From: Phaeosaccion multiseriatum
Lineage: Eukaryota > Protista > Ochrophyta, other classes
Length of the DNA: 64,000 bases
Direction: 5' to 3'
Assembly: GCA_965112735.1 (NCBI GenBank)
Contig: OZ218957.1
Span: 1,612,001-1,676,000 of the forward strand
Positions 1 to 19,234 of this stretch are shown piece by piece (position 1 is the stretch's first letter; the number at the start of each line of letters is the position of its first letter). Below the pieces are notes generated by a model. It was given only the letters and a program-made list of their open reading frames with translations, did no database searches and was not told where the DNA came from. A program made the translations under genes and the position numbers.

Positions 1-644
1 CTCGTTGGAGGTGATCTCTTGGCCTGCGAGCGTGTGGGCATAGGCCTCTACGATCTGTTGCCATCCAAGGGGGTAATCTCCTCCCCCATGTGGTCTTCCG
101 GGGGTGGTGGGGGGGCCTCCGCTCCTTAGAGCTTGTCTGAGGAGGGGCATATAGAAGTGCGAGTTGGTAGGCGGGAGCGCCGCGTCGCGCTGGTGGCGTA
201 TGGTGTTGCTCCATGTCGTTGGTGCGTGTCCATGCGTGTCTGTTTCGAGTGATGCTGTCTCTTCCTCGTGCGTCGTGGGGGGTGGTCGTACGAGGTCGGC
301 GATGGCCTCGGCCGTGTTGTGGTGGGTCAGTTCCGTCGCGGTGAGGTTTAGGCTTGCGAACTCAGCGCTGATGCGTCGGCTGGCGGATGCTGGCGCTTGT
401 TCGTTGAAGAAGAGGTTCGGGTGTTGCCGTATGGGGGTCGTGGCTGTGAGGTGGGTGTCTTCGTATTCGTCTTGGAGGATGGAGACGATTTGCTCTGTGA
501 TCCCGTGTGCGTTTCTGTGAGTTGACGCGTTGGTGGTTTGGGCTGGATCTGAGGCTCGGAAAGTGGCGGTTGGCCTTTCCGGGCTGCGTGCTCGGGGGGT
601 CCTGCTTCGTCCCCTTGGCCTCGTGGTTGGCTGCATGGGTGCTG
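1..644 (-). mobile_element. 5' part of a 5'-truncated copy (copy 0) of the CRE-like non-LTR retrotransposon; its 3' part lies left of the window
   Basis: 1-644 matches ~14580-15223 of the full-length copy. The match stops at ...catgggtgctg and host zinc-finger repeat sequence (agaagaagcag...) follows. Confidence 0.92.
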
Positions 645-722
645 AGAAGAAGCAGGTCCAAGGAGGATTGTGCACTAGGCACGGAGCTGTGAGAAAGACG
701 TGTACTGTGGAGGGGTGTGAGA

Positions 723-2635
723 TGTATATTAGAGCTTATGGGCTCAGTATTGGAGCGCTCGAGGTAAGTTGTAACCATGTGTAGATGCGTGTATGTGTGG
801 TATTGATGGAGCGTGAGGTGGAGGGGAAGAGGATGGTAAGGGTGGTAGAGTAGAGGATAATGGGGAATGGGAAGGGAGTGAAGGGGGGAGGAGGAGATGA
901 AGGGGTGTGGGAAGGAGTGAGGTGGTGGAGGTGATATGTGAACTAGCCTACTGTGGGTGGTGCGGGTGACAAGGCGTGACTAACTGTGGTTGCTATGCTG
1001 TGTGCTGATGGTCTCGCTGTCTGCTGGCTGGTGTACTCCTGCTCCTCAGGCGGCCGCTCCGTCGATGGCTCCCATGAGCCCCCAGTCGAGGGTTTCTGCT
1101 GCTTCGTGCTGCGTCATGGTGGCTCGAAGGAGGGTGCCATACCTGATCTCCCGCTGTGAGAGGGCGCGTTGAAGGGCGAGGGACAGTTGTTGGCGCAGGA
1201 GGCCCTTGATGGGGCCCGTGGCTGCCGCCGCTGCGGGGCCGAGCCCTCTTGATGCCTTGTGGATGGCCATCGCCTCGATGAGCTCGTCCGTTTGGTGGCC
1301 CAGTCTGCCGTACGTCTCGATTGCAATGCACTTCAGGGTTGAAGTCCCGGGCAGAAAACTGCCCAGGTAAACTGCCCAGGTAGTGGGTGCGCTTGCGTTC
1401 TTCGGCGGCGGCTGCTGCGTGGCCTGGCGTGGTGGAGGCCCGTCCCACGTGAGTGGGGGCGGTGGGGTTGGTGACGGTGATGTCGCAGAGGAGGTTTCTC
1501 CGCAGGGGTGCGTCCGCTCCCGGGAAGCTACCTGCGGGATAGGTCAGGTCCATGCGTAGGTCTCGGCCTGCTCGGGTGCCCGTGGGGCCGTCGAAGCAGG
1601 TCTGGTCCTCTACACGTGCTCCTCCAATGCCCACGCTGTGCATCATCCTCCCGAAGGCCTTGACGAGGAGGTGGTGTGTGTGGTTGTGGAGGCCGGTGCG
1701 GGGGCAGATGGTGGCGTGGGTAGTGCTTGCCGTGCGGGCGCAGCCTGTGCCAAGGCAGGGTGGGGGCGGGTCCGCGTATGGCGTGTTGACACCGAGGTTG
1801 CGACGAAGGGCCATGGTCCATTCTGCGGGGGCCATGGTGTTGTGGCCGTGGGGGAGCGCTCCGAGGAAGGCCATGGCGCCCCTTCCTCGCTGTGAGTGGA
1901 GTCGGGCTGTTGCCATTTCCTGTGTCTCCTCTCCCCTCTGTGCCTCTGCCGGTGTGACGTCGATGGTGGCGATGCTCTGCGTCAGCTCCTCATGGCGGCG
2001 TTTGTGGATGAAGGTGGTGAGGGCCTTCTGGACGCCGTGGGTCGGTTGACGGCCTGCCTGATGGCTCCTGCGCACGTTGCGTCGCGCTGTGTCCTGGGCT
2101 TGGTGGTCAGGCGGCTCGAGTACGCGTGAGCGGGCCTCGTCGAACTGTGCCTGACCCACTGCTTGGATGAGGGGGGCCTCAGGGACCCCCTCCTCGTGCA
2201 GGAGGTTGACGCTGTCGGCGACGCTCTTGAGGGCTCCGTTGGTGAACAGCTGGTCCGGTAGGGCGCTCTCTTGGGAGCCTTCCCGGCGTGCGGTGCGGCT
2301 GAGCAGGGGGGGGAGGGTGAGCATCTTGTTGCCAAGGTATGCTGCTGGGGCGATGTCGTGGAGGCTGGTGAGGCCGAGGCCGCCGAAGCGCCGTGCCGTA
2401 TGCATTTGTAGGCGCTGTGTCTCCGTCCATGGCTCCTCTTGTGCATCTGCGGCCTGCTCCAGAGGGGGGGCATCGGGGAGTCGCATGATGTGGGCCATTG
2501 TCGCTCTGTTGGTGCGGTCTGCCCTGCTGCCGAGGGCGCGTCGGAAGATGGAGGGGTCAATGGCTCTCGCCAGGTGTGTGAGCCTGGCTGGGAGGCATTG
2601 GAGGAGGACGTGGGTGGCCGCCTGGGTGTTGTCCC
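723..2635 (-). mobile_element. CRE-like non-LTR retrotransposon copy A, 5'-truncated (3' UTR, endonuclease, post-RT region), frameshifted
   Basis: Near-identical to copy B from 5513 onward. It starts right after GAGGGGTGTGAGA (710-722). A 13-bp duplication AAACTGCCCAGGT (1356-1368 and 1369-1381) shifts the frame. Confidence 0.95.
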
Positions 2636-2780
2636 GCAAAGCTTGTGCCCACAAAGAGGAGGGTGAAACGCCAGAGCCGTTGATCCCCCTCGGGGCGTGC
2701 CTAGGAAACCGACATTCTTATTATACCCCAGAATGTATGACCGGAAACCCTTAGGCAGGACAATCTACCACACTACCCCC
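2636..2780 (-). repeat. Polypurine tract (2773-2780) and start of the 3' LTR (TGTGGTAG.. from 2772)
   Basis: Minus strand reads GGGGGTAG|TGTGGTAGATTG about 40 nt after the pol stop. TATA-like TATAATAA at 2718-2725. No second LTR in the window to confirm. Confidence 0.6.
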
Positions 2781-2816
2781 AAGCGACAGTTCGAGTCGAC
2801 TCGGAAGCAAATGTGT

Positions 2817-5160
2817 CTATCCGGTGTTTGTCCTCTTGCGCGTGCGCGCAGGTCGCGCCGGAGCGCGGGCCGAAGAAGTGCGGCGATCGGCGCGCTGCTT
2901 CTGGGCTGCCTGTCGTGTCGCAAGGGTGCGGAGATAGGCTCGGACTGCGCTGACTAATTGCTTGTCCTGATGTTTCTGCAGGTAGGTCTCCAGTAAACGT
3001 GGAGTGTCCTCATGCAGTGTCTCGATGGGCTCCTCGCTATTCTCGAGGGCTTCAAAGCCACGCCACTTAACAATGACATGCCATGAACCATCTGCGTGCT
3101 TAACGAGGCCTTCAAAAGCCTCCACCACAAAGTCTTGGGTGTTGTATGAAATCTGCTGTAGTACGTCGGTGGTGACGTTCACGTGAGCACCGCAATAGTA
3201 TCGGAGGCGGCTGACATGTACCTCAGAAGTACGCTTCTTGCCTACCAGCTCTTCCACCTTGTATACGTGCTGCTCAAGGGCTTCAAGTACTCGGCAGGGT
3301 CCATGCCACTTGCCTAGTATCTTGCTTGTGGGCCCTACTGTTGCCACGAGCACATAGACTCCGACCTGAAACAGCGTCTCGCTGTTGAGCTGCTTAGCTC
3401 TGGCCAAGTCCTGACGATGCTCTGCACCACGTCTGCCGCTCATCAGCCTCTGGTTGATGCCATCTCGCTTGTGATCGCGGAGGGTGGTCAAATGACGCTC
3501 CGCTTCGGCGCGCTGCCCCTCCTTCCTCTGATGGAGTTGTGTTGCAAGGGTGTCTCTCTGCGCCGGGGTCAGCTGCAGTAGCCGAACCTTTTGCAGTCGA
3601 TCCGCATCGTGGATCAGAATCGTGTCGAGAGGCCGCTGTGGTATGTGACCGCTGTGCAGCTGGATGGGAGACATGCTAGACCGACTGCTCTTGTTGGAGC
3701 TGTTCTCAACAGCCTCCATCACTGGCAGTAGTTGCGGCCATGTCTCGGGCGGCTGTCGTAGCTCAGACATCATTGATCTCATGATCTTCTGCAATGTCTG
3801 TACACCACGCTCGCCCAATCCTCGACTATATGGGTTGTGTGCTACCACAAAGTGGTGGTTGCACCGCAAGAGCTGACTTAGCTCACGTATCACTTCATTT
3901 AAGAAATGACTGCCTCGGTCACTCTGCCATCTGGGCACTACGCCATGCTGTGCGAACCAGCGCAATAGACCGCGTGCACACACTCGTGCAGTAGCTTCCA
4001 AGCATGGCTCATACATTGACAATGACGAGAAGTCATCAAAGATGCACAGCACTTGCTTCACATGAAGCTTCATGAACCCTTCTGGGGACTCTGCCCATAT
4101 AACTCCATCGCCAATCTTGACGAAGTCAAACCAGATGAGCTGCTGGGGTCCAGTAGCGTGCCATTGAGCTAGCAGGGGGCGAGGCACTCTCTCGCCCTTG
4201 CCGTTGGTGAGGCAGTGGAGACAGTTCTGAACGAGGCTTCGCACGTCCTTGTCTAGCGAGTGCCAAATGAACTTCTCCTTAATAGCACTCAAGGTATTTG
4301 TCTCTCCCTGATGGCCCATCATACCCTGATGGCCAGTCACACACAGTCTCAGGTGCATGTCCTCCGCCTTGGCTCCCACCGAGGGAATCCAAATGCGGGT
4401 GCTGTCAGCGGGGTTGCTCGTCGGATGGCACGCTCGAATCAACCCGTCGTCGCCAACTGATGAAAGGAGCAGGCGGCGCCCGTTCTCTCCCACCTCCTTG
4501 CTAGCCTGCTGGAGCTCCTGAAGAGCGTCTGCCTGCAGACTGGCAATCTCAGTCTTGGAGGGCCAAGTGAAGTCGTCACACATAGTGTCAAACACTTGCA
4601 TGGGCCCAAACTTGCCCAAAGCGAGCACACTAGGGGTGAGGCTCACCGGTTGCGTGTACCGCCTGCTAATGGGGTCGGCCCAATCATGGAGATGACCAGG
4701 GAAGTGGACAATGACGTAGTCAAAGCTCTGAAGGCGCACGGCCTGACGCTGCAGCCTGTCCCTCATAGGCTTAGTCATGCCCGGGTACCTGCTGTCGTTG
4801 CTCATCATGAACGCCAGGTTGCGATGGTCGCAAAAGATGTGCACTTTCTGTGCCCCGACCAAGGCGTACTCGTTCTGGATCAAGCCTCGGAGTGTCGCGT
4901 CTCCTTCCTTGTCTATGGTGGCACGCCTCAGCTCTGCGCCTTCAAAAGCGCCTGAGCCGAAGGCCACCGGGATGTGGTTCATCTCATGTACCGGAAGGCA
5001 CAGCTCTTTGGGGTCGATGTATGTAATCATACATCCCCAGTAGAGGTCGCTAGCATCTGGGAATACCAGTGCCAGTTTGGTTGGGTCTGGGTGCGACAGC
5101 ACCGTGTTCTGTGCAAGGACGCGCTTAATCTGGAAGAAAGCGTCGTCGTGCTCTGTGGTC
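2817..5160 (-). CDS. pol: Partial gypsy Pol: RT connection, RNase H, integrase (HHCC, DDE, GPY/F-like), chromodomain
   Basis: Motifs DAFFQIK..LSHPD, FPDASDLYWG, DKE, FCDHRNL, ADPISR; GHQGMMGH..CLHC; WFDF, SDRGSHF, GLGER; WHGPCRV; VEAF..HVIVKWRGFEALENSEEP. Confidence 0.9.
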
Positions 5161-5162
5161 CC

Positions 5163-5486
5163 AGCCCACCCCCAGCAGCAGCAACCACAACCGATCTCAA
5201 CGACACGGCAACAACCAGCACCCGCCGCCAGGAGATCTACCACGCCCGCCAGCGAGACAACAGGCCCTACAACAGCACCACCCCCCACCGCGACCAGCCC
5301 AGCACCCATGCAGCCAACCACGAGGCCAAGGGGACGAAGCAGGACCCCCCGAGCACGCAGCCCGGAAAGGCCAACCGCCACTTTCCGAGCCTCAGATCCA
5401 GCCCAAACCACCAACGCGTCAACTCACAGAAACGCACACGGGATCACAGAGCAAATCGTCTCCATCCTCCAAGACGACACGAAGAC
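5163..5486 (+). mobile_element. Inverted fragment of the non-LTR element's 5' coding region
   Basis: Reverse complement of ~15036-15360 with a few substitutions (AHPQQQQPQPISTTRQQ...IVSILQD). Confidence 0.92.
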
Positions 5487-5512
5487 GTGGGAGACACATC
5501 GGGGGTGTGAGA

Positions 5513-8500
5513 TGTATATTAGAGCTTATGGGCTCAGTATTGGAGCGCTCGAGGTAAGTTGTAACCATGTGTAGATGCGTGTATGTGTGGTATTGATGGA
5601 GCGTGATGTGGAGGGGAAGAGGATGGTAAGGGTGGTAGAGTAGAGGATAATGGGGAATGGGAAGGGAGTGAGGGGGGGAGGAGGAGATGAAGGGGTGTGG
5701 GAAGGAGTGAGGTGGTGGAGGTGATATGTGAACTATCCTACTGTGGGTGGTGCGGGTGACAAGGCGTGACTAACTGTGGTTGCTATGCTGTGTGCTGATG
5801 GTCTCGCTGTCTGCTGGCTGGTGTACTCCTGCTCCTCAGGCGGCCGCTCCGTCGATGGCTCCCATGAGCCCCCAGTCGAGGGTTTCTGCTGCTTCGTGCT
5901 GCGTCATCGTGGCTCGAAGGAGGGTGCCATACCTGATCTCCCGCTGTGAGAGGGCGCGTTGAAGGGCGAGGGACAGTTGTTGGCGCAGGAGGCCCTTGAT
6001 GGGGCCCGTGGCTGCCGCCGCTGCGGGGCCGAGCCCTCTTGATGCCTTGTGGATGGCCATCGCCTCGATGAGCTCGTCCGTTTGGTGGCCCAGTCTGCCG
6101 TACGTCTCGATTGCAATGCACTTCAGGGTTGAAGTCCCGGGCAGAAAACTGCCCAGGTAGTGAATGCGCTTGCGCTCTTCGGCGGCGGCTGCTGCGTGGC
6201 CTGGCGTGGTGGAGGCCCGTCCCACGTGGGTGGGGGCGGTGGGGTTGGTGACGGTGATGTCGCAGAGGAGGTTTCTCCGCAGGGGTGCGTCCGCTCCCGG
6301 GAAGCTACCTGCGGGATAGGTCAGATCCATGCGTAGGTCTCGGCCTGCTCGGGTGCCCGTGGGGCCGTCGAAGCAGGTCTGGTCCTCTACACGTGCTCCT
6401 CCAATGCCCACGCTGTGCATCATCCTCCCGAAGGCCTTGACGAGGAGGTGGTGTGTGTGGTTGTGGAGGCCGGTGCGGGGGCAGATGGTGGCGTGGGTGG
6501 TGCTTGCCGTGCGGGCGCAGCCTGTGCCGAGGCAGGGTGGGGGCGGGTCCGCGTATGGCGTGTTGACACCGAGGTTGCGACGAAGGGCCATGGTCCATTC
6601 TGCGGGGGCCATGGTGTTGTGGCCGTGGGGGAGCGCTCCGAGGAAGGCCATGGCGCCCCTTCCTCGCTGTGAGTGGAGTCGGGCTGTTGCCATTTCCTGT
6701 GTCTCCTCTCCCCTCTGTGCCTCTGCCGGTGTGACGTCGATGGTGGCGATGCTCTGCGTCAGCTCCTCATGGCGGCGTTTGTGGATGAAGGTGGTGAGGG
6801 CCTTCTGGACGCCGTGGGTCGGTTGACGGCCTGCCTGATGGCTCCTGCGCACGTTGCGTCGCGCTGTGTCTTGGGCTTGGTGGTCAGGCGGCTCGAGTAC
6901 GCGTGAGCGGGCCTCGTTAAACTGTGCCTGACCCACTGCTTGGATGAGGGGGGCCTCAGGGACCCCCTCCTCGTGCAGGAGGTTGACGCTGTCGGCGACG
7001 CTCTTGAGGGCTCCGTTGGTGAACAGCTGGTCCGGTAGGGCGCTCTCTTGGGAGCCGTCCCGGCGTGCGGTGCGGCTGAGCAGGGGGGGGAGGGTGAGCA
7101 TCTTGTTGCCAAGGTATGCTGCTGGGGCGATGTCGTGGAGGCTGGTGAGGCCGAGGCCGCCGAAGCGCCGTGCCGTATGCATTTGTAGGCGCTGTGTCTC
7201 CGTCCATGGCTCCTCTTGTGCATCTGCGGCCTGCTCCAGAGGGGGGGCATCGGGGAGGCGCATGATGTGGGCCAGTGTCGCCCTGTTGGTGCGGTCTGCC
7301 CTGCTGCCGAGGGCGCGTCGGAAGATGGAGGGGTCAATGGCTCTCGCCAGGTGTGTGAGCCTGGCTGGGAGGCATTGGAGGAGGACGAGGGTGGCCGCCT
7401 GGGTGTTGTCCCACTCGCTGCAGTGTTTGGCGAGTTGGAGGTAGCCCCTGGGGTCTTCTTGGCCGAGGATGTTGCGGAGGTACTCTTCGATGTACTCCTC
7501 CGTGCCGACGGGGATGCCGGCTACCACGGTACCCTCGGTGGCAAGTGTGGCGCCCTGCCGTTGGGCGTGGTCCCTGTCAGCCTGTGTTGGCTGCTTGCCT
7601 TTGCCCATGAGGTAAACCGTTTTCCTCTCGTTGAACTCGAGGCCCAAGCCTCGGAATTGGGCTTGGAGATGGGCATGGCGTGGGGCGTAGGTCTGTAGGG
7701 GTGCGTCGGGTTCCAGCTGGTCCATGAGGTCGTCTGCGTAGGCGGAGATGGTGGGGCGGTTCGCTGCGGTGTCGGCTGTGTTCTGAACTTTCAGCACTGG
7801 GTGGATGGCGGCTGCGAACATGAGAGGCCCTTCTGGTGCTCCTTGGTTGACTCCGGAGCTCTGGTGGATGGTCTGGGTGCCGTCTGGTGTGAGGGCGTTG
7901 TGGGCGGAGGCGTGGGAGAGGCTGGCGATGGCGTAGTTGATGCCTGCTGGGTCGATGGTAGGGAGTGCGCCTGAGGCAAGGACGCCTCTGGCACGCGACA
8001 CGCGGGTGTAGGCCTTGGTGATGTCATGCAGCACGACGGTTTTGCCGGCATCGTGCGCTAGCTGGGCTGCTGCGGCGTGTGTTTCCCCTCCGCCTCTGAC
8101 CGCTACCGCTAGCTGTCCTGCGCTTCTGAGCTCTAGGCCCACCCTGTCCGCGATGAGCTTCATGTGACAGCTCTCCACGAGGCTGCGGTAGAGGTTGGGG
8201 GATGTCACAGGACGCGCTTTCTCGCCGAGGGCTGCGGCGCTGGTGCTGAACCACCGTTTGGCGAGCTGTGGAGGCAGTGGAGTGTCCCCCGTTCGGAGCA
8301 GCTCGTAGGTGTCAGTCAGAGCCTCCACGATTGCGTACTCCTGGGGGCTGTCCGGGGGGTACTTGACGTGGCTCGCCCTGCGCCCGTCTGCTCCTTGGCC
8401 CTTCCAGTAGTTGACCCTCCGGTAGGTCAGCAGCATGGCTGTGCTGATCTCCTCTCTGGTGACGTCGTTGCCATTCTCGGGGTGCTCCTGCACCTGGGTT

Positions 8501-8843
8501 CTGGCGTACTCCCTGGCTGCTGTTGCTGCTGTGTTGATCTCTTCGAGGCTCTCGTCGACGTGCGCTTGCTGGAGGCGTCGAAAGGTCTCGTGTGTGGGAG
8601 GGAGGTGGCCGTCTCTGCTCTTTGTGCTGAGCCTCGCCGCGGCCTTGTGCAGGCCTCCGGGTTTGGTGAGCAGGTGGGCGCAGGTTTCTCTCCGTCGCTC
8701 CTCTGTCTGTGCCTGTGCTGGGGGTGGTGGGCGGCGTGCGTGTGCTGTGGCTATCGCTGCTTGTGCGAGTGGGGCGATGTCGAGGTCGAGGACCATCTGT
8801 ATCCGCTGCTGGCGGCTGTAGGCTCCGTCTTTAGAGAAGAGCA
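5513..8843 (-). mobile_element. CRE-like non-LTR retrotransposon copy B, 5'-truncated, with intact RT and endonuclease frame (5836-8843)
   Basis: Flanked by GGGGTGTGAGA (5502-5512) and AGGGGTGTGAGA (8844-8855). Uninterrupted ~1000-aa frame. Confidence 0.95.
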
Positions 8844-9267
8844 AGGGGTGTGAGAAGCATCAGATCCAAGGAGGACTGTGCACTAGGCATGGAGCTGTGG
8901 TCAAGAGGTGTACTGTGGAGGGGTGTGAGATGAGGGGTGTGAGATGTATATTAGAGCTTATGGGCTCAGTATTGGAGCGCTCGAGGTAAGTTGTAACCAT
9001 GTGTAGATGCGTGTATGTGTGGTATTGATGGAGCGTGATGTGGAGGGGAAGAGGATGGTAAGGGTGGTAGAGTAGAGGATAATGGGGAATGGGAAGGGAG
9101 TGAGGGGGGGAGGAGGAGATGAAGGGGTGTGGGAAGGAGTGAGGTGGTGGAGGTGATATGTGAACTATCCTACTGGGGGTGGTGCGGGTGACAAGGCGTG
9201 ACTAACTGTGGTTGCTATGCTGTGTGCTGATGGTCTCGCTGTCTGCTGGCTGGTGTACTCCTGCTCC

Positions 9268-12200
9268 TCAGGCGGCCGCTCCGTCGATGGCTCCCATGAG
9301 CCCCCAGTCGAGGGTTTCTGCTGCTTCGTGCTGCGTCATCGTGGCTCGAAGGAGGGTGCCATACCTGATCTCCCGCTGTGAGAGGGCGCGTTGAAGGGCG
9401 AGGGACAGTTGTTGGCGCAGGAGGCCCTTGATGGGGCCCGTGGCTGCCGCCGCTGCGGGGCCGAGCCCTCTTGATGCCTTGTGGATGGCCATCGCCTCGA
9501 TGAGCTCGTCCGTTTGGTGGCCCAGTCTGCCGTACGTCTCGATTGCAATGCACTTCAGGGTTGAAGTCCCGGGCAGAAAACTGCCCAGGTAGTGAATGCG
9601 CTTGCGCTCTTCGGCGGCGGCTGCTGCGTGGCCTGGCGTGGTGGAGGCCCGTCCCACGTGGGTGGGGGTGGTGGGGTTGGTGACGGTGATGTCGCAGAGG
9701 AGGTTTCTCCGCAGGGGTGCGTCCGCTCCCGGGAAGCTACCTGCGGGATAGGTCAGATCCATGCGTAGGTCTCGGCCTGCTCGGGTGCCCGTGGGGCCGT
9801 CGAAGCAGGTCTGGTCCTCTACACGTGCTCCTCCAATGCCCACGCTGTGCATCATCCTCCCGAAGGCCTTGACGAGGAGGTGGTGTGTGTGGTTGTGGAG
9901 GCCGGTGCGGGGGCAGATGGTGGCGTGGGTGGTGCTTGCCGTGCGGGCGCAGCCTGTGCCGAGGCAGGGTGGGGGCGGGTCCGCGTATGGCGTGTTGACA
10001 CCGAGGTTGCGACGAAGGGCCATGGTCCATTCTGCGGGGGCCATGGTGTTGTGGCCGTGGGGGAGCGCTCCGAGGAAGGCCATGGCGCCCCTTCCTCGCT
10101 GTGAGTGGAGTCGGGCTGTTGCCATTTCCTGTGTCTCCTCTCCCCTCTGTGCCTCTGCCGGTGTGACGTCGATGGTGGCGATGCTCTGCGTCAGCTCCTC
10201 ATGGCGGCGTTTGTGGATGAAGGTGGTGAGGGCCTTCTGGACGCCGTGGGTCGGTTGACGGCCTGCCTGATGGCTCCTGCGCACGTTGCGTCGCGCTGTG
10301 TCTTGGGCTTGGTGGTCAGGCGGCTCGAGTACGCGTGAGCGGGCCTCGTCGAACTGTGCCTGACCCACTGCTTGGATGAGGGGGGCCTCAGGGACCCCCT
10401 CCTCGTGCAGGAGGTTGACGCTGTCGGCGACGCTCTTGAGGGCTCCGTTGGTGAACAGCTGGTCCGGTAGGGCGCTCTCTTGGGAGCCGTCCCGGCGTGC
10501 GGTGCGGCTGAGCAGGGGGGAGGGTGAGCATCTTGTTGCCAAGGTATGCTGCTGGGGCGATGTCGTGGAGGCTGGTGAGGCCGAGGCCGCCGAAGCGCCG
10601 TGCCGTATGCATTTGTAGGCGCTGTGTCTCCGTCCATGGCTCCTCTTGTGCATCTGCGGCCTGCTCCAGAGGGGGGCATCGGGGAGGCGCATGATGTGGG
10701 CCAGTGTCGCCCTGTTGGTGCGGTCTGCCCTGCTGCCGAGGGCGCGTCGGAAGATGGAGGGGTCAATGGCTCTCGCCAGGTGTGTGAGCCTGGCTGGGAG
10801 GCATTGGAGGAGGACGAGGGTGGCCGCCTGGGTGTTGTCCCACTCGCTGCAGTGTTTGGCGAGTTGGAGGTAGCCCCTGGGGTCTTCTTGGCCGAGGATG
10901 TTGCGGAGGTACTCTTCGATGTACTCCTCCGTGCCGACGGGGATGCCGGCTACCACGGTACCCTCGGTGGCAAGTGTGGCGCCCTGCCGTTGGGCGTGGT
11001 CCCTGTCAGCCTGTGTTGGCTGCTTGCCTTTGCCCATGAGGTAAACCGTTTTCCTCTCGTTGAACTCGAGGCCCAAGCCTCGGAATTGGGCTTGGAGATG
11101 GGCATGGCGTGGGGCGTAGGTCTCTAGGGGTGCGTCGGGTTCCAGCTGGTCCATGAGGTCGTCTGCGTAGGCGGAGATGGTGGGGCGGTTCGCTGCGGTG
11201 TCGGCTGTGTTCTGAACTTTCAGCACTGGGTGGATGGCGGCTGCGAACATGAGAGGCCCTTCTGGTGCTCCTTGGTTGACTCCGGAGCTCTGGTGGATGG
11301 TCTGGGTGCCGTCTGGTGTGAGGGCGTTGTGGGCGGAGGCGTGGGAGAGGCTGGCGATGGCGTAGTTGATGCCTGCTGGGTCGATGGTAGGGAGTGCGCC
11401 TGAGGCTAGGACGCCTCTGGCACGCGACACGCGGGTGTAGGCCTTGGTGATGTCATGCAGCACGACGGTTTTGCCGGCATCGTGCGCTAGCTGGGCTGCT
11501 GCGGCGTGTGTTTCCCCTCCGCCTCTGACCGCTACCGCTAGCTGTCCTGCGCTTCTGAGCTCTGGGCCCACCCTGTCCGCGATGAGCTTCATGTGACAGC
11601 TCTCCACGAGGCTGCGGTAGAGGTTGGGGGATGTCACAGGACGCGCTTTCTCGCCGAGGGCTGCGGCGCTGGTGCTGAACCACCGTTTGGCGAGCTGTGG
11701 AGGCAGTGGAGTGTCCCCCGTTCGGAGCAGCTCGTAGGTGTCAGTCAGAGCCTCCACGATTGCGTACTCCTGGGGGCTGTCCGGGGGGTACTTGACGTGG
11801 CTCGCCCTGCGCCCGTCTGCTCCTTGGCCCTTCCAGAAGTTGACCCTCCGGTAGGTCAGCAGCATGGCTGTGCTGATCTCCTCTCTGGTGACGTCGTTGC
11901 CATTCTCGGGGTGCTCCTGCACCTGGGTTCTGGCGTACTCCCTGGCTGCTGCTGCTGCTGTGTTGATCTCTTCGAGGCTCTCGTCGACGTGCGCTTGCTG
12001 GAGGCGTCTAAAGGTCTCGTGTGTGGGAGGGAGGTGGCCGTCTCTGCTCTTTGTGCTGAGCCTCGCGGCGGCCTTGTGCAGGCCTCCGGGTTTGGTGAGC
12101 AGGTGGGCGCAGGTTTCTCTCCGTCGCTCCTCTGTCTGTGCCTGTGCTGGGGGTGGTGGGCGGCGTGCGTGTGCTGTGGCTATCGCTGCTTGTGCGAGTG

Positions 12201-14427
12201 GGGCGATGTCGAGGTCGAGGACCATCTGTATCCGCTGCTGGCGGCTGTAGGCTCCGTCTTTAGAGAAGAGCATGGCAGGGAGGAGGTGGTGGAAGACATC
12301 CCATGCCAGAAGGGTGTGGAGGGTGGCGTCGGTGGGGCCGTTCTTGTGGGCCCTCAGCGCCCTGTTCCAGTTGTTGAGCGCTCTTTGCTGTAAGCTGATA
12401 ATCGAGCTGACGTGGCGGGGGTTGCACTGCGCTACTGTCTCAAACACGAGTGTTGAGAGGATGGTACCCTGCGGGTCCAGGGCCCCTAGGCGGAGGACGT
12501 TTGGGTGCTGCATGGGCCATCCTTCCTCGGGTGTATCGTCGTTGGCTGGCCCTTCTCCGTCCCCTCCGTCCCCGCCGCTACCTCCTTGGCCTCTGCTCCG
12601 TCCTCCTCCCCCTCGTCTCGCTGCTGCTGCTGTGGTTCCTTGCGTGCGTGTGCTATCTCCCCCTGCCCTTTCTCTCTGAGGTCCCCTCTCTGCTGCTGCT
12701 CCTTGTCCGTTTCCTTCCCCCCTCCCTCGTCCTCCTCTTCCTCCTTCTACTCCACTTGGCGCTGCTGCGATTGCGCCTCCTCCTCCTCCTCCTCCTTCTT
12801 CCGCGTGCCCTCGCCCTCCTCCTCTGCCCGTGGGGGTGGTGGGTTGGTACGGGTTGAGCCTGGCCGTTGCTGTCGTGTGCTGGGGCGTTGCCGTACGCGA
12901 CGGGTCCTCGTTTGGGTCTGGGCCTAGATAGGCGTTCTCGAGGTCGTTGAGGGGGCCTTGGTAGGCCGATGCTGCGTTGCCTTGGGTGAGGATGGTCCTG
13001 AGGGCGGGGATGGCTCGTTGAGCTTGGTAGCCAGCCATGCAGCCTTGCGCGGGGCAGGGGAGGTTGCCTGGTGGTATGACGGGCTGCTGGTTGGCTCTCC
13101 TCAGTGTGGCTTGGTCGTTCAGGTGGTGAAGGAGGCACGCGGGGTGAACGGTGTGTTGGCAGCGTCGGGTGCGTACTGGCCACTCCGTGGTTGGTGCGAT
13201 GAAAGGGGGGTCCGCGTCTGACATGCATATGCAGCATATCGGGGCTGGGGGGGCGGTAGGTTGGGGTGGGGGTGTGTGTCGGGTGGTGGGGGGTGGCTGG
13301 GACTGGCGGCGTCGCCCTTGGCTGGCCTGCGCGTGCTGCTGATGCGAGTCTCTGCGCTCCCTCGCTAGGCGATCCCTTGCGCGGCCCATAGCTCTCCCTC
13401 CTTGTGCTGTGATGGCCTGCTCGATCGTGTGCCGGTAGCAGGGGTTGCGGCAGTAGGGGCAGAGGTGGTCGTTGCGGTTGGGGTACGTGCTCATGACTCC
13501 CAATGCGCAGTGGTTGTGCACGTGATGTTCGTCTTCGTGCATGGCGACTTGTGCTTGGCCAGTGAGCGGTTCCATACACACCGGGCAGTTGGGTAGCTCC
13601 TCGTTGTTGGTGGGGTCGCCTCCTCCTTCTGCTTCGTCACCTCCTCCCTCTGCTTGCCCTTCCCCTCCTTCTGCCGCTGCTTCCCGTGCCAGTGCTGGGC
13701 GCTCTCCTCCGCCTCTGCTGTTTTCGCCCTCTCCCCCCCCTGCTACTACTCTTCCGTCGCGGTCTCCTCGTCCCCCTCCCCTGTGTCCCGCTCGCTCTCC
13801 TCTCCCTTCTCCCTCCGGGTCGTGCTCCCGTGTAGTGTCTGTCCCACCTGCTCTTGTCGGTGGGGGCATGCTGCGAGCTCGTGGTGGGATGGTTGACGAT
13901 GCCGGGAGGTGTGCTGCTTCGTATGCTCGTATGCATGTGTGGCATATGGGCTGCCGTAGGCCTGCTTGCGGGAAGCTTCTGAGGAGGGATCTGCCGGAGT
14001 TTCTGTGGGCCAGGTTGCCGCATCCACGTATACAGTCACGTAGCTGATACGTTCTGTTCTGTGGTCCGCTCTGTGGGCCGTTGGCGCGGTACCACAGGAT
14101 TGACGCGGCCTGGGGGTGGTGTTCGCGCATCCATCGTTCCCACTCTCGGCCGCGGTTGGGGTGGTGGCTCAACTGGTGCCTGTTGAGGCGGTCTCTGGAC
14201 CTGCCGACCGTGACGAAGGTGTCATTGCACTGTTCGAAGTTGCAGAGGACTCCCGTGGCGATGTAGTTGTTGTCAATGTTCCTGCGGTACGCTGTGGTGT
14301 TGTTGTGGGTGTCGTCCGTCTGTGGCGTGGTTGTGTCACTGTGGGTGGGGGTGTTGGCGGTCCTGGTGCGGTTCCCCGGGGGGCCTGCCTCGTGCGTAAG
14401 GCGAGGGCTTGCCCCGGCGCCCACCAC
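9268..14427 (-). CDS. Retrotransposon polyprotein: C2H2 finger, 2 RING fingers, reverse transcriptase, CCHC knuckle, restriction-like endonuclease
   Basis: RT: HDITKAYTRVSR, GVNQGAPEGPLMF, AYADDL, GLEFNERKT, GIPVG, RFGGLGL..PAAYLG. Endonuclease region: CLGTGC..HATIC, RMDL, CDITVTNP, EERKRIHY, AIETYGRLG. The start is uncertain: the frame is open from 14502 and the first ATG is at 14130. Confidence 0.92.
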   Translation of the reverse strand: MVGAGASPRLTHEAGPPGNRTRTANTPTHSDTTTPQTDDTHNNTTAYRRNIDNNYIATGVLCNFEQCNDTFVTVGRSRDRLNRHQLSHHPNRGREWERWMREHHPQAASILWYRANGPQSGPQNRTYQLRDCIRGCGNLAHRNSGRSLLRSFPQAGLRQPICHTCIRAYEAAHLPASSTIPPRARSMPPPTRAGGTDTTREHDPEGEGRGERAGHRGGGRGDRDGRVVAGGGEGENSRGGGERPALAREAAAEGGEGQAEGGGDEAEGGGDPTNNEELPNCPVCMEPLTGQAQVAMHEDEHHVHNHCALGVMSTYPNRNDHLCPYCRNPCYRHTIEQAITAQGGRAMGRARDRLARERRDSHQQHAQASQGRRRQSQPPPTTRHTPPPQPTAPPAPICCICMSDADPPFIAPTTEWPVRTRRCQHTVHPACLLHHLNDQATLRRANQQPVIPPGNLPCPAQGCMAGYQAQRAIPALRTILTQGNAASAYQGPLNDLENAYLGPDPNEDPSRTATPQHTTATARLNPYQPTTPTGRGGGRGHAEEGGGGGGGAIAAAPSGVEGGRGGRGRGEGNGQGAAAERGPQRERAGGDSTRTQGTTAAAARRGGGGRSRGQGGSGGDGGDGEGPANDDTPEEGWPMQHPNVLRLGALDPQGTILSTLVFETVAQCNPRHVSSIISLQQRALNNWNRALRAHKNGPTDATLHTLLAWDVFHHLLPAMLFSKDGAYSRQQRIQMVLDLDIAPLAQAAIATAHARRPPPPAQAQTEERRRETCAHLLTKPGGLHKAAARLSTKSRDGHLPPTHETFRRLQQAHVDESLEEINTAAAAAREYARTQVQEHPENGNDVTREEISTAMLLTYRRVNFWKGQGADGRRASHVKYPPDSPQEYAIVEALTDTYELLRTGDTPLPPQLAKRWFSTSAAALGEKARPVTSPNLYRSLVESCHMKLIADRVGPELRSAGQLAVAVRGGGETHAAAAQLAHDAGKTVVLHDITKAYTRVSRARGVLASGALPTIDPAGINYAIASLSHASAHNALTPDGTQTIHQSSGVNQGAPEGPLMFAAAIHPVLKVQNTADTAANRPTISAYADDLMDQLEPDAPLETYAPRHAHLQAQFRGLGLEFNERKTVYLMGKGKQPTQADRDHAQRQGATLATEGTVVAGIPVGTEEYIEEYLRNILGQEDPRGYLQLAKHCSEWDNTQAATLVLLQCLPARLTHLARAIDPSIFRRALGSRADRTNRATLAHIMRLPDAPLWSRPQMHKRSHGRRHSAYKCIRHGASAASASPASTTSPQQHTLATRCSPSPLLSRTARRDGSQESALPDQLFTNGALKSVADSVNLLHEEGVPEAPLIQAVGQAQFDEARSRVLEPPDHQAQDTARRNVRRSHQAGRQPTHGVQKALTTFIHKRRHEELTQSIATIDVTPAEAQRGEETQEMATARLHSQRGRGAMAFLGALPHGHNTMAPAEWTMALRRNLGVNTPYADPPPPCLGTGCARTASTTHATICPRTGLHNHTHHLLVKAFGRMMHSVGIGGARVEDQTCFDGPTGTRAGRDLRMDLTYPAGSFPGADAPLRRNLLCDITVTNPTTPTHVGRASTTPGHAAAAAEERKRIHYLGSFLPGTSTLKCIAIETYGRLGHQTDELIEAMAIHKASRGLGPAAAAATGPIKGLLRQQLSLALQRALSQREIRYGTLLRATMTQHEAAETLDWGLMGAIDGAAA

Positions 14428-15641
14428 GGTGTGGCCATGGTGTTGGCGAAGGGGGAGGTGGTGGTGTTGTTGGTGTGGTCGCGTAGGGCGTGGCCGTAGC
14501 GCTCAACGATGGCTTGGACGTCGGGTAATACCGCGATGAGTTCCTCCTGTCGTGAGGCGGTGATGTAGTCGTTGACCAACTCGTTGGAGGTGATCTCTTG
14601 GCCTGCGAGCGTGTGGGCATAGGCCTCTACGATCTGTTGCCATCCAAGGGGGTAATCTCCTCCCCCATGTGGTCTTCCGGGGGTGGTGGGGGGGCCTCCG
14701 CTCCTTAGAGCTTGTCTGAGGAGGGGCATATAGAAGTGCGAGTTGGTAGGCGGGAGCGCCGCGTCGCGCTGGTGGCGTATGGTGTTGCTCCATGTCGTTG
14801 GTGCGTGTCCATGCGTGTCTGTTTCGAGTGATGCTGTCTCTTCCTCGTGCGTCGTGGGGGGTGGTCGTACGAGGTCGGCGATGGCCTCGGCCGTGTTGTG
14901 GTGGGTCAGTTCCGTCGCGGTGAGGTTTAGGCTTGCGAACTCAGCGCTGATGCGTCGGCTGGCGGATGCTGGCGCTTGTTCGTTGAAGAAGAGGTTCGGG
15001 TGTTGCCGTATGGGGGTCGTGGCTGTGAGGTGGGTGTCTTCGTATTCGTCTTGGAGGATGGAGACGATTTGCTCTGTGATCCCGTGTGCGTTTCTGTGAG
15101 TTGACGCGTTGGTGGTTTGGGCTGGATCTGAGGCTCGGAAAGTGGCGGTTGGCCTTTCCGGGCTGCGTGCTCGGGGGGTCCTGCTTCGTCCCCTTGGCCT
15201 CGTGGTTGGCTGCATGGGTGCTGGGCTGGTCGCTGTGGGGGGTGGTGCTGTTGTAGGGCCTGTTGTCTCGCTGGCGGGCGTGGTAGATCTCCTGGCGGCT
15301 GGTGCTGTTTGTTGCCGTGTCGTTGAGATCGGTTGTGGTTGCTGCTGCTGGGGGTGGGCTTCCGCTGCTGTTGCTGTGGGTTCCGTGAGTGCTGGTGGGA
15401 GCTGTGGGTCCTGCGGGAGGGTGTTGCGGGGTGCTGCGGCCGCTGGTGGAGCCGTGATGGGGGTGGGCACGCCTTCCCGTGCTGGTGTTTGGCGAATTGC
15501 TGCTGCCGCTGCCCGTCTCTCCCTTCTTTCGAGCCGCTGCTGATCGCGGCTCATAGGTGGCTCCTGCTGGGTTGCTGTGAGGTTTGCTGGTGTCTCCTGG
15601 GCTCCGGGGGGCCGCGTGGCCCCCCTGTCGTCCCCTTCCAT
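14169..15641 (-). CDS. Retrotransposon upstream ORF (Pro/Thr/Ala-rich); possibly the N-terminus of one continuous ORF
   Basis: 490-aa ORF with GCCACCATGG start context, overlapping the RT ORF, which lies in the -1 frame. Confidence 0.7.
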   Translation of the reverse strand: MEGDDRGATRPPGAQETPANLTATQQEPPMSRDQQRLERRERRAAAAAIRQTPAREGVPTPITAPPAAAAPRNTLPQDPQLPPALTEPTATAAEAHPQQQQPQPISTTRQQTAPAARRSTTPASETTGPTTAPPPTATSPAPMQPTTRPRGRSRTPRARSPERPTATFRASDPAQTTNASTHRNAHGITEQIVSILQDEYEDTHLTATTPIRQHPNLFFNEQAPASASRRISAEFASLNLTATELTHHNTAEAIADLVRPPPTTHEEETASLETDTHGHAPTTWSNTIRHQRDAALPPTNSHFYMPLLRQALRSGGPPTTPGRPHGGGDYPLGWQQIVEAYAHTLAGQEITSNELVNDYITASRQEELIAVLPDVQAIVERYGHALRDHTNNTTTSPFANTMATPWWAPGQALALRTRQAPRGTAPGPPTPPPTVTQPRHRRTTPTTTPQRTAGTLTTTTSPRESSATSNSAMTPSSRSAGPETASTGTS

Positions 15642-15763
15642 GGTGGCCCTGTCTTAAGCAGAAAAAAAGATGGGGTGTGTGTGAGAAGCAGCGGGTCCGA
15701 GGAGGATTGTGCACTAGGCATGGAGCTGTGGTCAAGAGGTGTACTGTGGAGGGGTGTGAGAAG

Positions 15764-15820
15764 TATATTAGAGCTTATGGGCTCAGTATTGGAGCGCTCG
15801 AGGTAAGTTGTAACCATGTG
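15764..15820 (-). mobile_element. 57-bp extreme 3'-end insertion of the same retrotransposon
   Basis: tatattagagc...taaccatgtg is identical to the element's 3' terminus and is flanked by AGGGGTGTGAGAAG at 15750-15763 and 15821-15834. Confidence 0.93.
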
Positions 15821-16834
15821 AGGGGTGTGAGAAGCATCCGATCCAAGGAGGATTATGCATTAGGCATGGAGCTGTGGTCAAGATGTGTACTGTGGAGGGG
15901 TGTGAGAAGCAAGCAAGAGGTGGATGTGATGGAATGTGTTGGCGTCATGCTCGAATGAAAGGGGAGGGAGCGGAGCAGACGGGGAAGATAACCCAGGGCA
16001 CGCCTAAACCCAAGCGAGGAGCTGCCACCGACATCGATACGAGAGGAAGGAAGAGGGCGAAGTTCCCCCCTTCAGTTGAGGGAGGGGAGAGGCAGCAGGA
16101 AGAGAAGGCAGCAGCGGAGGAGGATGGGGATGGAGTAGGTTTGCTTGCGAGGCTGGGGCTTCATGTCGGGGATGAGATTCAGCTTCCCAATGGTCTGTGG
16201 AGAGAGCTGGAAGATGCTGCTGCCGACGCTGCCATAGCCTGCTGGGGCCACCGGGATAGGCAGCTGTCGAATGGCGTGGTGGTGTCTGTGGGCCAGAGTA
16301 AGGTGTTGCTGCTGCCCCATTACGCTGTGCGCACCAAGAGGAAGGGGACCAGCCTGGAGAGCACGATTCGAGGCTTTGTGTCTGCCTACCAGCGCTATCG
16401 CTCAGGAGGAGGAGGGGGTGACGAGGATGACGAGAAGCAGCAGGACGAGTGGGAGGTGCTGGAGGAGAGCATGGTGGCGGCGAGTGAGAAGAAGAGGCGG
16501 GGACGGAAGGCGCTGCGAGCGTGCGTGCGTGTGGGGCGCGTGGCAGGGGCTTGTGCTGGTGCTGATACCTCGGGACTGGGGATGTAGTGACGCGAAGCCG
16601 TCCGCCTCATCGCCTGTCTTTCGGGGCCTGCCGACGGAGCTTGTGGCTCTCGGGGCCCGTACTTACGGAGCTTTTGCGAGGGTCGACGACCGACCGGCGG
16701 AAGAGGAAAAAGGAAGAGGAAGAGGAAGAGGAAGAGGAAGCGGAAGAAGCAGGGCTACCGCCATACGGGCATACGGGCAGTGTGCTTTGACTGTCCCTTT
16801 CCCTTCTCTGCGGGGCTACTGGAGCGACCACCGC

Positions 16835-16876
16835 ACCACACCACACCACACCACACCACACCACACCACACCACAC
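16835..16876. repeat. (CCACA)n microsatellite
   Basis: Directly visible. Confidence 0.9.
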
Positions 16877-17991
16877 TGCACCTTCCCTCACTCCACTTGC
16901 TTGCTCAAGGCGCATCCGTGGCTCGGCTCATTATTGCTCTGCGGAAGGGCGTGAAGGTGAGGATGAGGGCGCTCTTTTGCTCCTTTCCTTGCGAAGGCAG
17001 CGGATGTCGAGTATGTAACGTACATGTCGTGAGTGAGTTGAGTTCCTTTGGAGAGGAGAGGAGAGAAGAGGAGTACAAGGGGATAAGAGGACAGGCCTTG
17101 TCAAGCTCTTGTCATGCGTTTGTCAAGCAAGTGCCAAGCAAGTGTCAAGCGCGACGGACGGATTGGGTTGAGAAGGCACCCCCACCCACCTGAAGCGGGG
17201 AGGCACCCAAGCCAAGACAGCAGATGGGGGAATCCACGCACGCACGCACGCACGTCGAGAGTGGGAAGGTGAAGGAATCAAGGAAGGAAGGAAGGAAGGA
17301 AGGAAGGAGGGCGGGCGAACGAGGAACGGTCGTCCCTCGAAAGGGACAGGAGGGGCAGCGAAGGGAAGGGAAGGGTCACGCAGATGTCCTCACCCTGATT
17401 GGTTGATGATTGTAATTCGCTGGTGGCTCTGCTGGGATTTACTTTCAGTCTCAGCTTATAAAGCTGAGCCGGTCAACTCCAAGGGCCGCCCCTGTCGCGC
17501 CAGAGCCATTGGACGGTCCTGGTTGCTTATCAGGGTTGGCGTTACAGACTGAAACGGAATGGCCCTTCGCCTCACCGTAACTGTATACCCGTAAGCGAGT
17601 AGAGAGAGCTTGGAGTTGGAAGCAGTTACAAAGAGCTTGAAAGCAGCAGCATACTGGTACATGTACACAAAGTGGAACGGGAGGTGAGACTCTCGCCTGT
17701 TTTTGTGAATCCAGGATAGTCTACACTATCCTTATTCTTAATGTACTGAGAGCCATTGGTGATCTTTTTTTACACGACTTACAAGGCCACAGGGGGGAGG
17801 GGGGGTGTTGCAAGTCGGCCCGACTCGCCTACAGCTCTCTTGCCTCTTGCCGTAGTGGCACAATTGTTTCCTCCCGCCCTTGAGTGAGAGAGCAAAGTGC
17901 TGTCTTTACACTACCTGGCTGCCAATTCCCTGCAGTTCTGCAGTGAACCCCCGCGCCCCCGTGTTCTCCCAAAGATGAAAGCGAAGGAACG

Positions 17992-18289: not shown

Positions 18290-19234
18290 CCAGCGCTTGC
18301 TTTGGGTCTGTAGCCGAAGACCCTCATCTTGACCGCTTTGGGTCTGTAGCCAAAGACCCTCATCTTGACCGCTTTGGGTCTGTAGCCGAAGACCCTCATC
18401 TTGACCGCTTTGGGCCCGTAGCCGAAGACCCTCGTCTTGACCGCTTTGGGTCTGCAGCCGAAGACCCTCATCTTGACCGCTTTGGGTCTGTAGCCGAAGA
18501 CCCTCATCTTGACCGCTGTGAGTCAGAAGCCGAAGACCCTCATCTTGACCGCTTTGAGTCTGTACCCGAAGACGCTCATCTTGACCGCTTTGAGTCAGAA
18601 GCCGAAGACCCTCATCTTGCCCGCTTTGAGTGTGTAGCCGAAGACGCTCATCTTGACCGCTTTGAGTCAGAAGCCGAAGACCCTCATCTTGCCCGCTTTG
18701 AGTCTGTAGCCGAAGACCCTCATCTTGACCGCTTTGGGTCTGTAGCCGAAGACCCTCATCTTGACCGCTGTGAGTCAGAAGCCGAAGACCCTCATCTTGA
18801 CCGCTTTGAGTCTGTACCCGAAGACCCTCATCTTGACCGCTTTGAGTCAGAAGCCGAAGACCCTCATCTTGCCCGCTTTGAGTGTGTAGCCGAAGACGCT
18901 CATCTTGACCGCTTTGAGTCAGAAGCCGAAGACCCTCATCTTGCCCGCTTTGAGTCTGTAGCCGAAGACCCTCATCTTGACCGCTTTGAGTCTGTAGCCG
19001 AAGACCCTCATCTTGACCGCTTTGAGTCAGAAGCCGAAGACCCTCATCTTGACCGCTTTGAGTCTGTAGCCGAAGACCCTCATCTTGACCGCTGTGAGTC
19101 AGAAGCCGAAGACCCTCATCTTGCCCGCTTTGAGTCTGTGGCCGAAGACCCTCATCTTGACCGCTTTGAGTCAGAAGCCGAAGACCCTCATCTTGACCGC
19201 TCTGAATCAGAAGCCGAAGACCCTCATCTTGACC
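18290..19234. repeat. 36-bp minisatellite, ~26 units
   Basis: Unit GCCGAAGACCCTCATCTTGACCGCTTTGAGTCTGTA with variants and a 7-unit higher-order duplication. Confidence 0.95.

Follow-up and report, generated by a model that had tools for sequence, protein, structure and literature searches.

Those non-LTR (LTR, long terminal repeat) retrotransposons that are site-specific are thought to persist by means of targets that are multicopy, largely dispensable and non-coding. Here we describe an element from the stramenopile alga Phaeosaccion multiseriatum whose target appears to be coding sequence. It was found in a 64,000-nucleotide stretch (the window) of contig OZ218957.1, positions 1,612,001-1,676,000, which corresponds to C8:1612001-1676000 in a genome of 67 Mb and 22 contigs. 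We consider it highly probable that this is an autonomous non-LTR retrotransposon with a restriction-like endonuclease (RLE) that targets a fixed site in the tandem Zf_WRKY19 finger coding repeat of a multigene family. The targets described for such elements are rRNA, spliced-leader, small nuclear RNA (snRNA) and tRNA genes, microsatellites, telomeres and other transposons (PMC4640811), and a 2026 review of R2 diversity adds no protein-coding target (PMC13580325). Our full-text literature searches found no element homing to a protein-coding repeat, which bears out an earlier note on this DNA, made from the letters alone, whose author did not recognize the target as a described one.

The nearest known system is R2, which inserts in 28S rDNA (for example, Bombyx R2Bm and the avian and turtle R2 elements). 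The Phaeosaccion element shares with R2 a reverse transcriptase (RT) followed by a linker, a CCHC knuckle and an RLE, and R2 proteins are its best structural match. Both occupy one fixed site in a multicopy tandem target, with a precise 3' junction, a variable 5' junction, frequent 5' truncation and no poly(A). The differences are that the target is a protein-coding finger repeat rather than 28S rDNA, that the N-terminus carries a C2H2-like finger and two RING-like clusters with no Myb domain by Pfam in place of the zinc finger(s) plus Myb of R2, that Rfam finds no hepatitis delta virus (HDV)-like ribozyme in the element, and that identity outside the RT is too low for phmmer. R2 elements lie in sense orientation in their target and rely on co-transcription with that gene. 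This strategy would be unavailable to the Phaeosaccion element, which lies antisense to its target gene.

Other RLE-type elements offer further points of comparison. The trypanosomatid elements CRE1/CRE2, SLACS and CZAR, as well as NeSL-1, likewise use one position in a multicopy tandem gene and have N-terminal zinc fingers, but their targets are small RNA genes, namely spliced-leader exons (PMC4640811), in contrast to the Zf_WRKY19 coding units that flank the element described here. NeSL also carries a Ulp1-like protease (PMC4640811), which Pfam does not find in our element. Utopia is a site-specific RLE-type lineage known from stramenopiles (oomycetes); its specificity varies in strength, its target is the U2 snRNA gene, and oomycete Utopia has an RNase H upstream of the RT (PMC4640811), a domain not found by Pfam in the Phaeosaccion element. 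Homing endonuclease genes and mobile group II introns are similar in concept, in that they home to coding sequence and their site is kept constant by coding constraint. However, their enzymology is unrelated, their targets are single-copy genes, and splicing removes them from the host transcript or protein, whereas insertion of this element, as far as can be judged from the DNA, truncates the host protein. The mechanism appears to be that of R2, CRE, NeSL and Utopia. As far as we have found, neither this type of target nor an obligate antisense orientation relative to an mRNA gene has been described before.

Evidence for site specificity comes from the element's 3' junctions. The earlier note had proposed, from four junctions in the window, that the element targets a zinc-finger coding motif shared by a multigene family, and had suggested that the flanks of all genomic 3' termini be tabulated. 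A 23-nt word from the 3' terminus occurs at 125 genomic sites, with clusters on C1 at 0.09-0.78 Mb, on C8 at 1.43-2.66 Mb and on C13 and scattered copies elsewhere, and 84 of these junctions were read base by base. The exact sequence GGGGTGYGA(G/C)A adjoins the element 3' end in 65 of the 84, and GGGGTGYGAGA is present with at most two mismatches in 80. A recognizable Zf_WRKY19-type finger unit is found at 62 junctions, with 54 distinct 52-nt flanks, and degenerate fingers at about six more. In fifteen cases the junction is preceded by a further copy of the element and the target motif stands between the two, and one junction (C8:2661266) has an unrelated flank. Copies are therefore not mostly in unrelated flanks or microsatellites. 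Some junctions retain a shortened target, merely TGTGAGA or TGTGAAA (C8:1587861, C8:1526766 and C8:2661266). On the coding strand the junction reads ...GAGGGGTGYGA(G/C)A, abutted by the element 3' end ...TAATATACA, so that the insertion point follows the first base of the codon after ...C-T-V-E-G-C-E/D. Because the finger frame reads on the strand that is the reverse complement of the element, insertion is always antisense; the claim that all insertions are antisense holds genome-wide wherever the flank is a finger.

Many sites are empty. At least 203-230 canonical sites are unoccupied genome-wide; most C1 sites are empty, and in the C8 cluster the element fills approximately half of the canonical ones. 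The count of occupied against empty sites that had been suggested gives, for C8, 41 occupied and 44 exact empty-type sites, some of the latter being the duplicated copy at a 5' junction.

Comparison of the copies with their flanks indicates that many of the insertions arose separately. The 3' 900 nt of copies on C1 and C8 are 98.2-100% identical to the window copy. In contrast, the 62-nt host flanks are approximately 66% identical between C1 and C8 and 75% within each contig (overall range, 66-76%), and the target Cys codon is TGC in C1 units and TGT in C8 units. Six full-length copies are 98.1-100% alike and form two subfamilies. Copy length ranges up to 6,716 nt, with short examples of 33 (the minimum), 58, 74 and 109 nt, and all copies share the same 3' end. 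Given that the copies are at least 98% alike and their host flanks only 66-76% alike, these are, by sequence comparison, recent and independent insertions.

The window itself contains an array of such insertions. Alignment of a full-length copy to window positions 1-17000 by BLAST gives the following layout, in which the order is that of the host-sense (plus) strand.

1-644, minus strand: E0, 5'-truncated element copy (element nt 439-1082), 100% BLAST identity to the full-length copy over 644 nt; its 3' part falls beyond the left window edge
645-722, plus strand: host finger unit 1, with target GAGGGGTGTGAGA at its end (710-722); the host frame reads ...GGLCTRHGAVRKTCTVEGCE
723-2635, minus strand: E1, 3' 1.9 kb of the element (nt 4821-6716), from terminus word and BLAST
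2636-5162, minus strand: foreign 2.5-kb Ty3/gypsy pol fragment (RNase H, integrase, chromodomain) at the truncated end of E1
5163-5486, plus strand: inverted element piece (nt 302-626, sense on plus), from BLAST
5502-5512, plus strand: target 11-mer before E2
5513-8843, minus strand: E2, 5'-truncated copy of 3.33 kb (nt 3390-6716), from terminus word and BLAST
8844-8930, plus strand: host finger unit 2, with a duplicated target at its start (8845-8855) and a target at its end (8920-8930)
8931-8944, plus strand: 14-bp tandem duplication of the target plus 1-3 nt (Tandem Repeats Finder, period 14, 2.1 copies, 100%)
8945-15661, minus strand: E3, full-length element of 6,716 nt, from BLAST and copy comparison
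15672-15761, plus strand: host finger unit 3, with a lengthened target copy GGGGTGTGTGTGAGA at its start
15762-15820, minus strand: E4, 58-59-nt 3' end fragment of the element, from terminus word and BLAST
15821-15907, plus strand: host finger unit 4, with an empty target (15897-15907) and AGCA next
15908-16587, plus strand: last degenerate finger and approximately 200-aa C-terminal tail of the host gene, to the stop codon at 16587 (open reading frame (ORF) 15874-16587)

The terminus word occurs at four sites in the window (exactly at 723, 5513 and 8945, and with one mismatch at 15762) and at none in shuffled sequence, and GGGGTGTGAGA immediately precedes each of the four termini (712-722, 5502-5512, 8934-8944 and 15751-15761). 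The motif is thus shared by all four 3' junctions, as the earlier note had stated. Its coordinates for three of them (722/723, 5512/5513 and 8944/8945) are exact, but the fourth, placed at 15763/15764, is really at 15761/15762 or 15762/15763; the terminus there has an A where other copies have a T. Not all of these junctions abut a finger unit as claimed. Three do, whereas 5512/5513 has merely an 11-12-nt motif behind an inverted element fragment. The six proposed events and the empty last site agree with the BLAST layout.

Two features of this array are observations in their own right. At 2635/2636, E1 passes into 2.5 kb of Ty3/gypsy pol in the same orientation, after which come 324 nt from the 5' region of the element, inverted, and a target motif; Pfam finds RT_RNaseH, Integrase_H2C2, rve and Chromo domains on the ORF at 2817-5414. 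The whole of 723-5512 looks like a chimera produced within one target site by template switching during reverse transcription plus inversion. At 8918-8946, ahead of E3, the 14-bp unit GAGGGGTGTGAGAT occurs twice, exactly, and we read this duplication as an abortive, near-empty insertion that left a target duplication and 1-3 nt. Very short inserts resembling it are found at C8:1688313 and at locus L040.

The sequence into which the element inserts belongs to a family of host genes. Pfam Zf_WRKY19 (PF24906) matches two host ORFs with E-values of 6e-28 and 7e-36 (96.7 and 122.1 bits, against a cut-off of 27) and six to seven units in each, and matches the last degenerate finger in the window (ORF 15874-16587) at 2e-4. 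Each unit is a repeat of approximately 24-25 aa with the pattern C-x3-G-C-x7-11-G-x-C-x2-H-G, in which the target encodes ...K-R/T-C-T-V-E-G-C-E/D-K.... A genome scan gave 909 candidate units in open frames of approximately 80 to 1,125 aa on many contigs, and all 150 units that were scored exceed the curated Pfam cut-off. Among paralogs, identity in the C-terminal tail, which is not repeated, is 94-97% inside the C8 cluster, 70-75% for C1 and 64% for C2. The ratio of nonsynonymous to synonymous substitution rates (dN/dS) of 0.3-0.7 between paralogs indicates coding constraint on this tail, albeit relaxed. The target motif is thus shared across a multigene family, as had been proposed. A word-index search found no relatives of the tail outside the P. 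multiseriatum genome. At an insertion, the host frame continues for 20 codons into the element and then reaches a stop, so each insertion removes the downstream fingers and the tail from the host protein. The more speculative suggestion of the earlier note, that the fingers may repress transposons and be disabled by the element, finds no support in this analysis.

The exact 11-mer GGGGTGYGAGA occurs 521 times in the genome, compared to 222 times for a reversed-pattern control, and roughly 200 copies would therefore be background outside finger genes. None of 59 exact-11-mer junctions lies outside a finger or element context. Because these background 11-mers are unused, the recognized site is probably longer than 11 nt. 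An attempt to derive the site from occupied versus empty units was abandoned, because the two profiles are alike and support nothing more specific than a length above 11 nt.

Three other explanations of this pattern can be considered. One is that the specificity is illusory, and that the copies descend from one or a few old insertions into a finger gene through segmental duplication and gene conversion of the tandem gene arrays. Such duplication does occur: seven junctions with the same 24-codon flank lie in a 4.1-kb array on C1 (680-693 kb), and the pair at C8:1587861/1588422 recurs at C8:1731608/1732171. However, duplication of old insertions would not readily give 54 distinct finger flanks, a copy length that differs by site from 33 nt to 6.7 kb, or nearly identical copies (at least 98.2%) beside divergent flanks with a different Cys codon, nor would it place C8-type target bases at the 5' end of C1 copies. 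We regard this explanation as highly improbable. The array on C1 (C1:680000-694000, loci L018-L025) is of separate interest. There, at least four tandem copies exist of a 4.1-kb unit that comprises a finger-gene fragment with two insertions (948 nt and more than 1.5 kb), so the occupied genes have themselves been amplified by segmental duplication.

A loose preference for a GT/GA-rich 7-11-mer, perhaps through annealing of the RNA 3' end, could also produce these junctions if the word is merely abundant in finger genes. The few junctions that keep just TGTGAGA or TGTGAAA, and the use of microhomology in 5' joins, are compatible with such a preference. Yet if all exact 11-mers were equal, some 220 of the 521 would be background and approximately 43% of junctions would be expected outside finger genes, compared to the 0 of 59 observed, and we judge this alternative very unlikely. 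Finally, the 75-bp units could be a terminal repeat or transduced flank of the element itself and not part of a host gene. At the 5' end of full-length copies there are indeed 8-11 bases derived from the target, and a target-like GGGGTGTGGGA lies in the 3' untranslated region (UTR). Against this, units beside different copies are highly divergent and are continuous with long open frames that have a conserved C-terminal tail; the element is missing beside at least 230 units, and finger units are present on many contigs without any listed terminus. This possibility, which the earlier note had raised as a challenge to its own reading, has in our view a negligible probability; the divergence of the flanks relative to the copies marks the units as host sequence.

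We therefore return to insertion by a site-specific RLE-type element, for which the following mechanism can be proposed. By analogy with R2, the element protein would bind finger-unit DNA over a site longer than the 11-mer, and the RLE would nick the coding strand after ...GAGA, between GAGA and AGCA. The nicked end would then prime cDNA synthesis at the 3' end of the element RNA. A cut in the other strand approximately 11-13 nt upstream would give the duplicated GGGGTGYGAGA, and the 5' end would be joined by microhomology or following premature termination. Reuse of the duplicated site would generate head-to-tail arrays.

The junctions have the footprint of target-primed reverse transcription: terminal repeats and a poly(A) tail are absent and 5' truncation is present. 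The 5' end joins at a variable point with 0-13 nt of target repeated, and microhomology is frequent. Duplicated target copies at 5' junctions are seen in the window at 8845-8855 and 15822-15832, and reuse of duplicated targets has produced head-to-tail arrays. In 14 full-length copies, the host-sense sequence at the 5' end is ...CTTAAGCAG followed by a run of 7-12 A (13 of the 14 copies have 7 or 8), usually GA(A/T), GGG(G)TGTG... and the local host sequence. Three of the four full-length C1 copies have C8-type TGTG before the local TGCGAGA, that is, GGGGTGTG ahead of local GGGGTGCGAGA, which implies that those bases travelled with the RNA. The simplest reading is that the element RNA begins a few bases upstream, in the target copy flanking a donor in a C8-type unit. 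At 15662-15676 and other subfamily-B 5' junctions, the sequence AAAAAAAG-ATG-GGG-TGT-GAG contains an ATG whose frame is that of the host fingers downstream. In subfamily A, GAA replaces GAT at this junction, and the in-frame ATG is hence not conserved.

The near-target GGGGTGTGGGA occurs approximately 180-190 nt from the 3' end (plus strand 902-912, 5692-5702 and 9124-9134), and several truncated copies stop at 148-200 nt. The proximity of these endpoints to GGGGTGTGGGA suggests that its microhomology with the target may set a preferred truncation point.

The proteins of the element place it among RLE-bearing retrotransposons. The following features were identified in the full-length window copy, E3.

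15642-15671, minus strand: 5' leader, CTGCTTAAGACAGGGCCACC before the ATG, with a T run and ATC ahead
14169-15641, minus strand: first reading frame, starting with the ATG at 15641 and 490 codons long, without a Pfam match
9268-14427, minus strand: second reading frame, 1,719 codons, with fingers, RT and endonuclease
14161-14244, minus strand: C2H2-like finger, motif C-x4-C-x16-H-x4-H
13039-13587, minus strand: two RING-like Cys/His clusters upstream of the RT (zf-RING_2 E 0.005, below cut-off)
11035-11550, minus strand: RT core (Pfam RVT_1), with YADD at 11158-11169
9589-9966, minus strand: CCHC knuckle (9913-9966) and RLE motifs
9757-9768, 9682-9702 and 9589-9609, minus strand: RLE motifs RMD, LLCDITV and ERKRIHY, respectively
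8945-9267, minus strand: 3' UTR, 323 nt, pyrimidine-rich and weakly structured, ending in the 3' terminus given above

The leader of the full-length copy is 20 nt with a strong Kozak context, the two frames overlap by 259 nt (14169-14427), and the second frame includes a Gly/Arg-rich stretch. The structure z-score of the 3' UTR is -1.5, and an Rfam scan found no ribozyme, rRNA or other RNA family in or beside the element. The RVT_1 match has an E-value of 8e-7, just under the cut-off. In two alignments (A1 and A2), the C, H, C, H, D and K columns are invariant or nearly so. No apurinic/apyrimidinic-type endonuclease was detected, as Pfam gives no Exo_endo_phos match on either frame (E up to 0.01-0.1), and Pfam likewise finds no RNase H, Myb or Ulp1 domain on the element frames.

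An exhaustive HMMER search recovered 667 distant relatives, the best 28-31% identical, all of them metagenomic or draft-genome proteins. Although the single element protein gave nothing significant in a phmmer search of the PDB, a profile of 19 relatives matched L1 ORF2p (E 6e-16) and R2 proteins (E 1e-14 to 5e-10), with group II and retron RTs well behind. The last 331 residues, modeled with AlphaFold from 33 sequences, have a predicted local distance difference test score (pLDDT) of 91, and a Foldseek search of the PDB with this model ranks R2 proteins first through seventh (probability 0.90-1.00, 250-290 aligned columns), followed by Prp8 and PD-(D/E)XK cap-snatching nucleases. The model thus agrees with the earlier view of the element as RLE-type. 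We consider it an autonomous non-LTR retrotransposon of the early-branching group that bears an RLE (R2/CRE/NeSL), with predicted endonuclease activity; this assignment is at the level of the RLE-type group, within which the candidate clades are CRE, R2, R4, NeSL/Utopia, Hero or a new one. The RING match is absent in the six distant relatives scanned, and the RING-like clusters may therefore be specific to the lineage of the Phaeosaccion element. Named relatives were not found by word-index searches or cluster look-up, and the Atlas returned only "RVT_1 hypothetical" clusters. On the contigs of three relatives (L051-L053), which carry single copies whose ends are undefined, no finger motif was found beside the gene.

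One possibility that we examined is that the host tolerates full-length antisense insertions by splicing them out. Read on the host-sense strand, the element has AG|GTAAGT, a consensus 5' splice site, 41 nt inward of its 3' end, and its 5' end bears a pyrimidine-rich tract that finishes with CAG. Removal of approximately 6.66 kb would leave a scar of approximately 60-70 nt between two fingers; the predicted scar in the window copy is 66 nt and in frame, and other copies give other frames. The distance from acceptor to host frame varies among the 14 full-length 5' junctions, such that no consistent frame is maintained. We rejected this model as a general account and consider it unlikely. Four public runs that hold this stretch (X1-X4) are contig sets that behave like DNA, with even coverage, joints that match other genomic copies and no GT..AG joints.

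Several observations weigh against insertion by an autonomous element at this fixed site, or limit how far it can be taken. The 41 termini beyond those read base by base, on C2, C3, C5, C11, C12 and C13, were covered by pattern search; several fit the exact flank pattern, and the word GGTGYGANA(A/T) plus terminus has 77 genomic occurrences. Some copies are segmental duplicates, as in the C1 array in which seven junctions share one 72-nt flank, and such junctions were counted once in the figures for distinct flanks. Occupied and empty units give the same sequence profile, in a comparison confounded by protein constraint. The putative nick position and staggered second cut derive from the junctions alone, and the four public runs, being DNA-like contig sets, bear on genomic sequence. 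None of six full-length copies has a single uninterrupted frame, and the breaks fall at differing places; the first frame, for example, is 494 codons long in the window copy, against 1,059 at C8:1565224. Some breaks may be homopolymer errors in the assembly. Where the two frames overlap, an extra G follows window position 14346 in all contigs of X2 and X4 and in approximately one-tenth of the contig depth in the other two runs; it reflects either such an error or a difference between copies. Together, the breaks and the extra G would fit a progenitor with one long frame as well as assembly homopolymer errors.

Elsewhere in the window, a 36-bp tandem array of 26 copies (91% matches) at 18299-19235 is unrelated to the element. 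Long (GAAG)n and further repeats of short period lie on its flanks.

Use of the coding sequence of a protein domain, repeated in tandem and across a gene family, would widen the range of "safe harbor" targets available to site-specific retrotransposons. With approximately half of the canonical sites in the C8 cluster filled, the P. multiseriatum genome would provide a natural case of a transposon eroding one gene family. R2-type proteins are under development for targeted gene insertion, and the element described here could be a source of an RLE/RT enzyme, its activity predicted, with a well-defined new DNA target. A further question, and one open to test, is whether the element interacts with the finger family.

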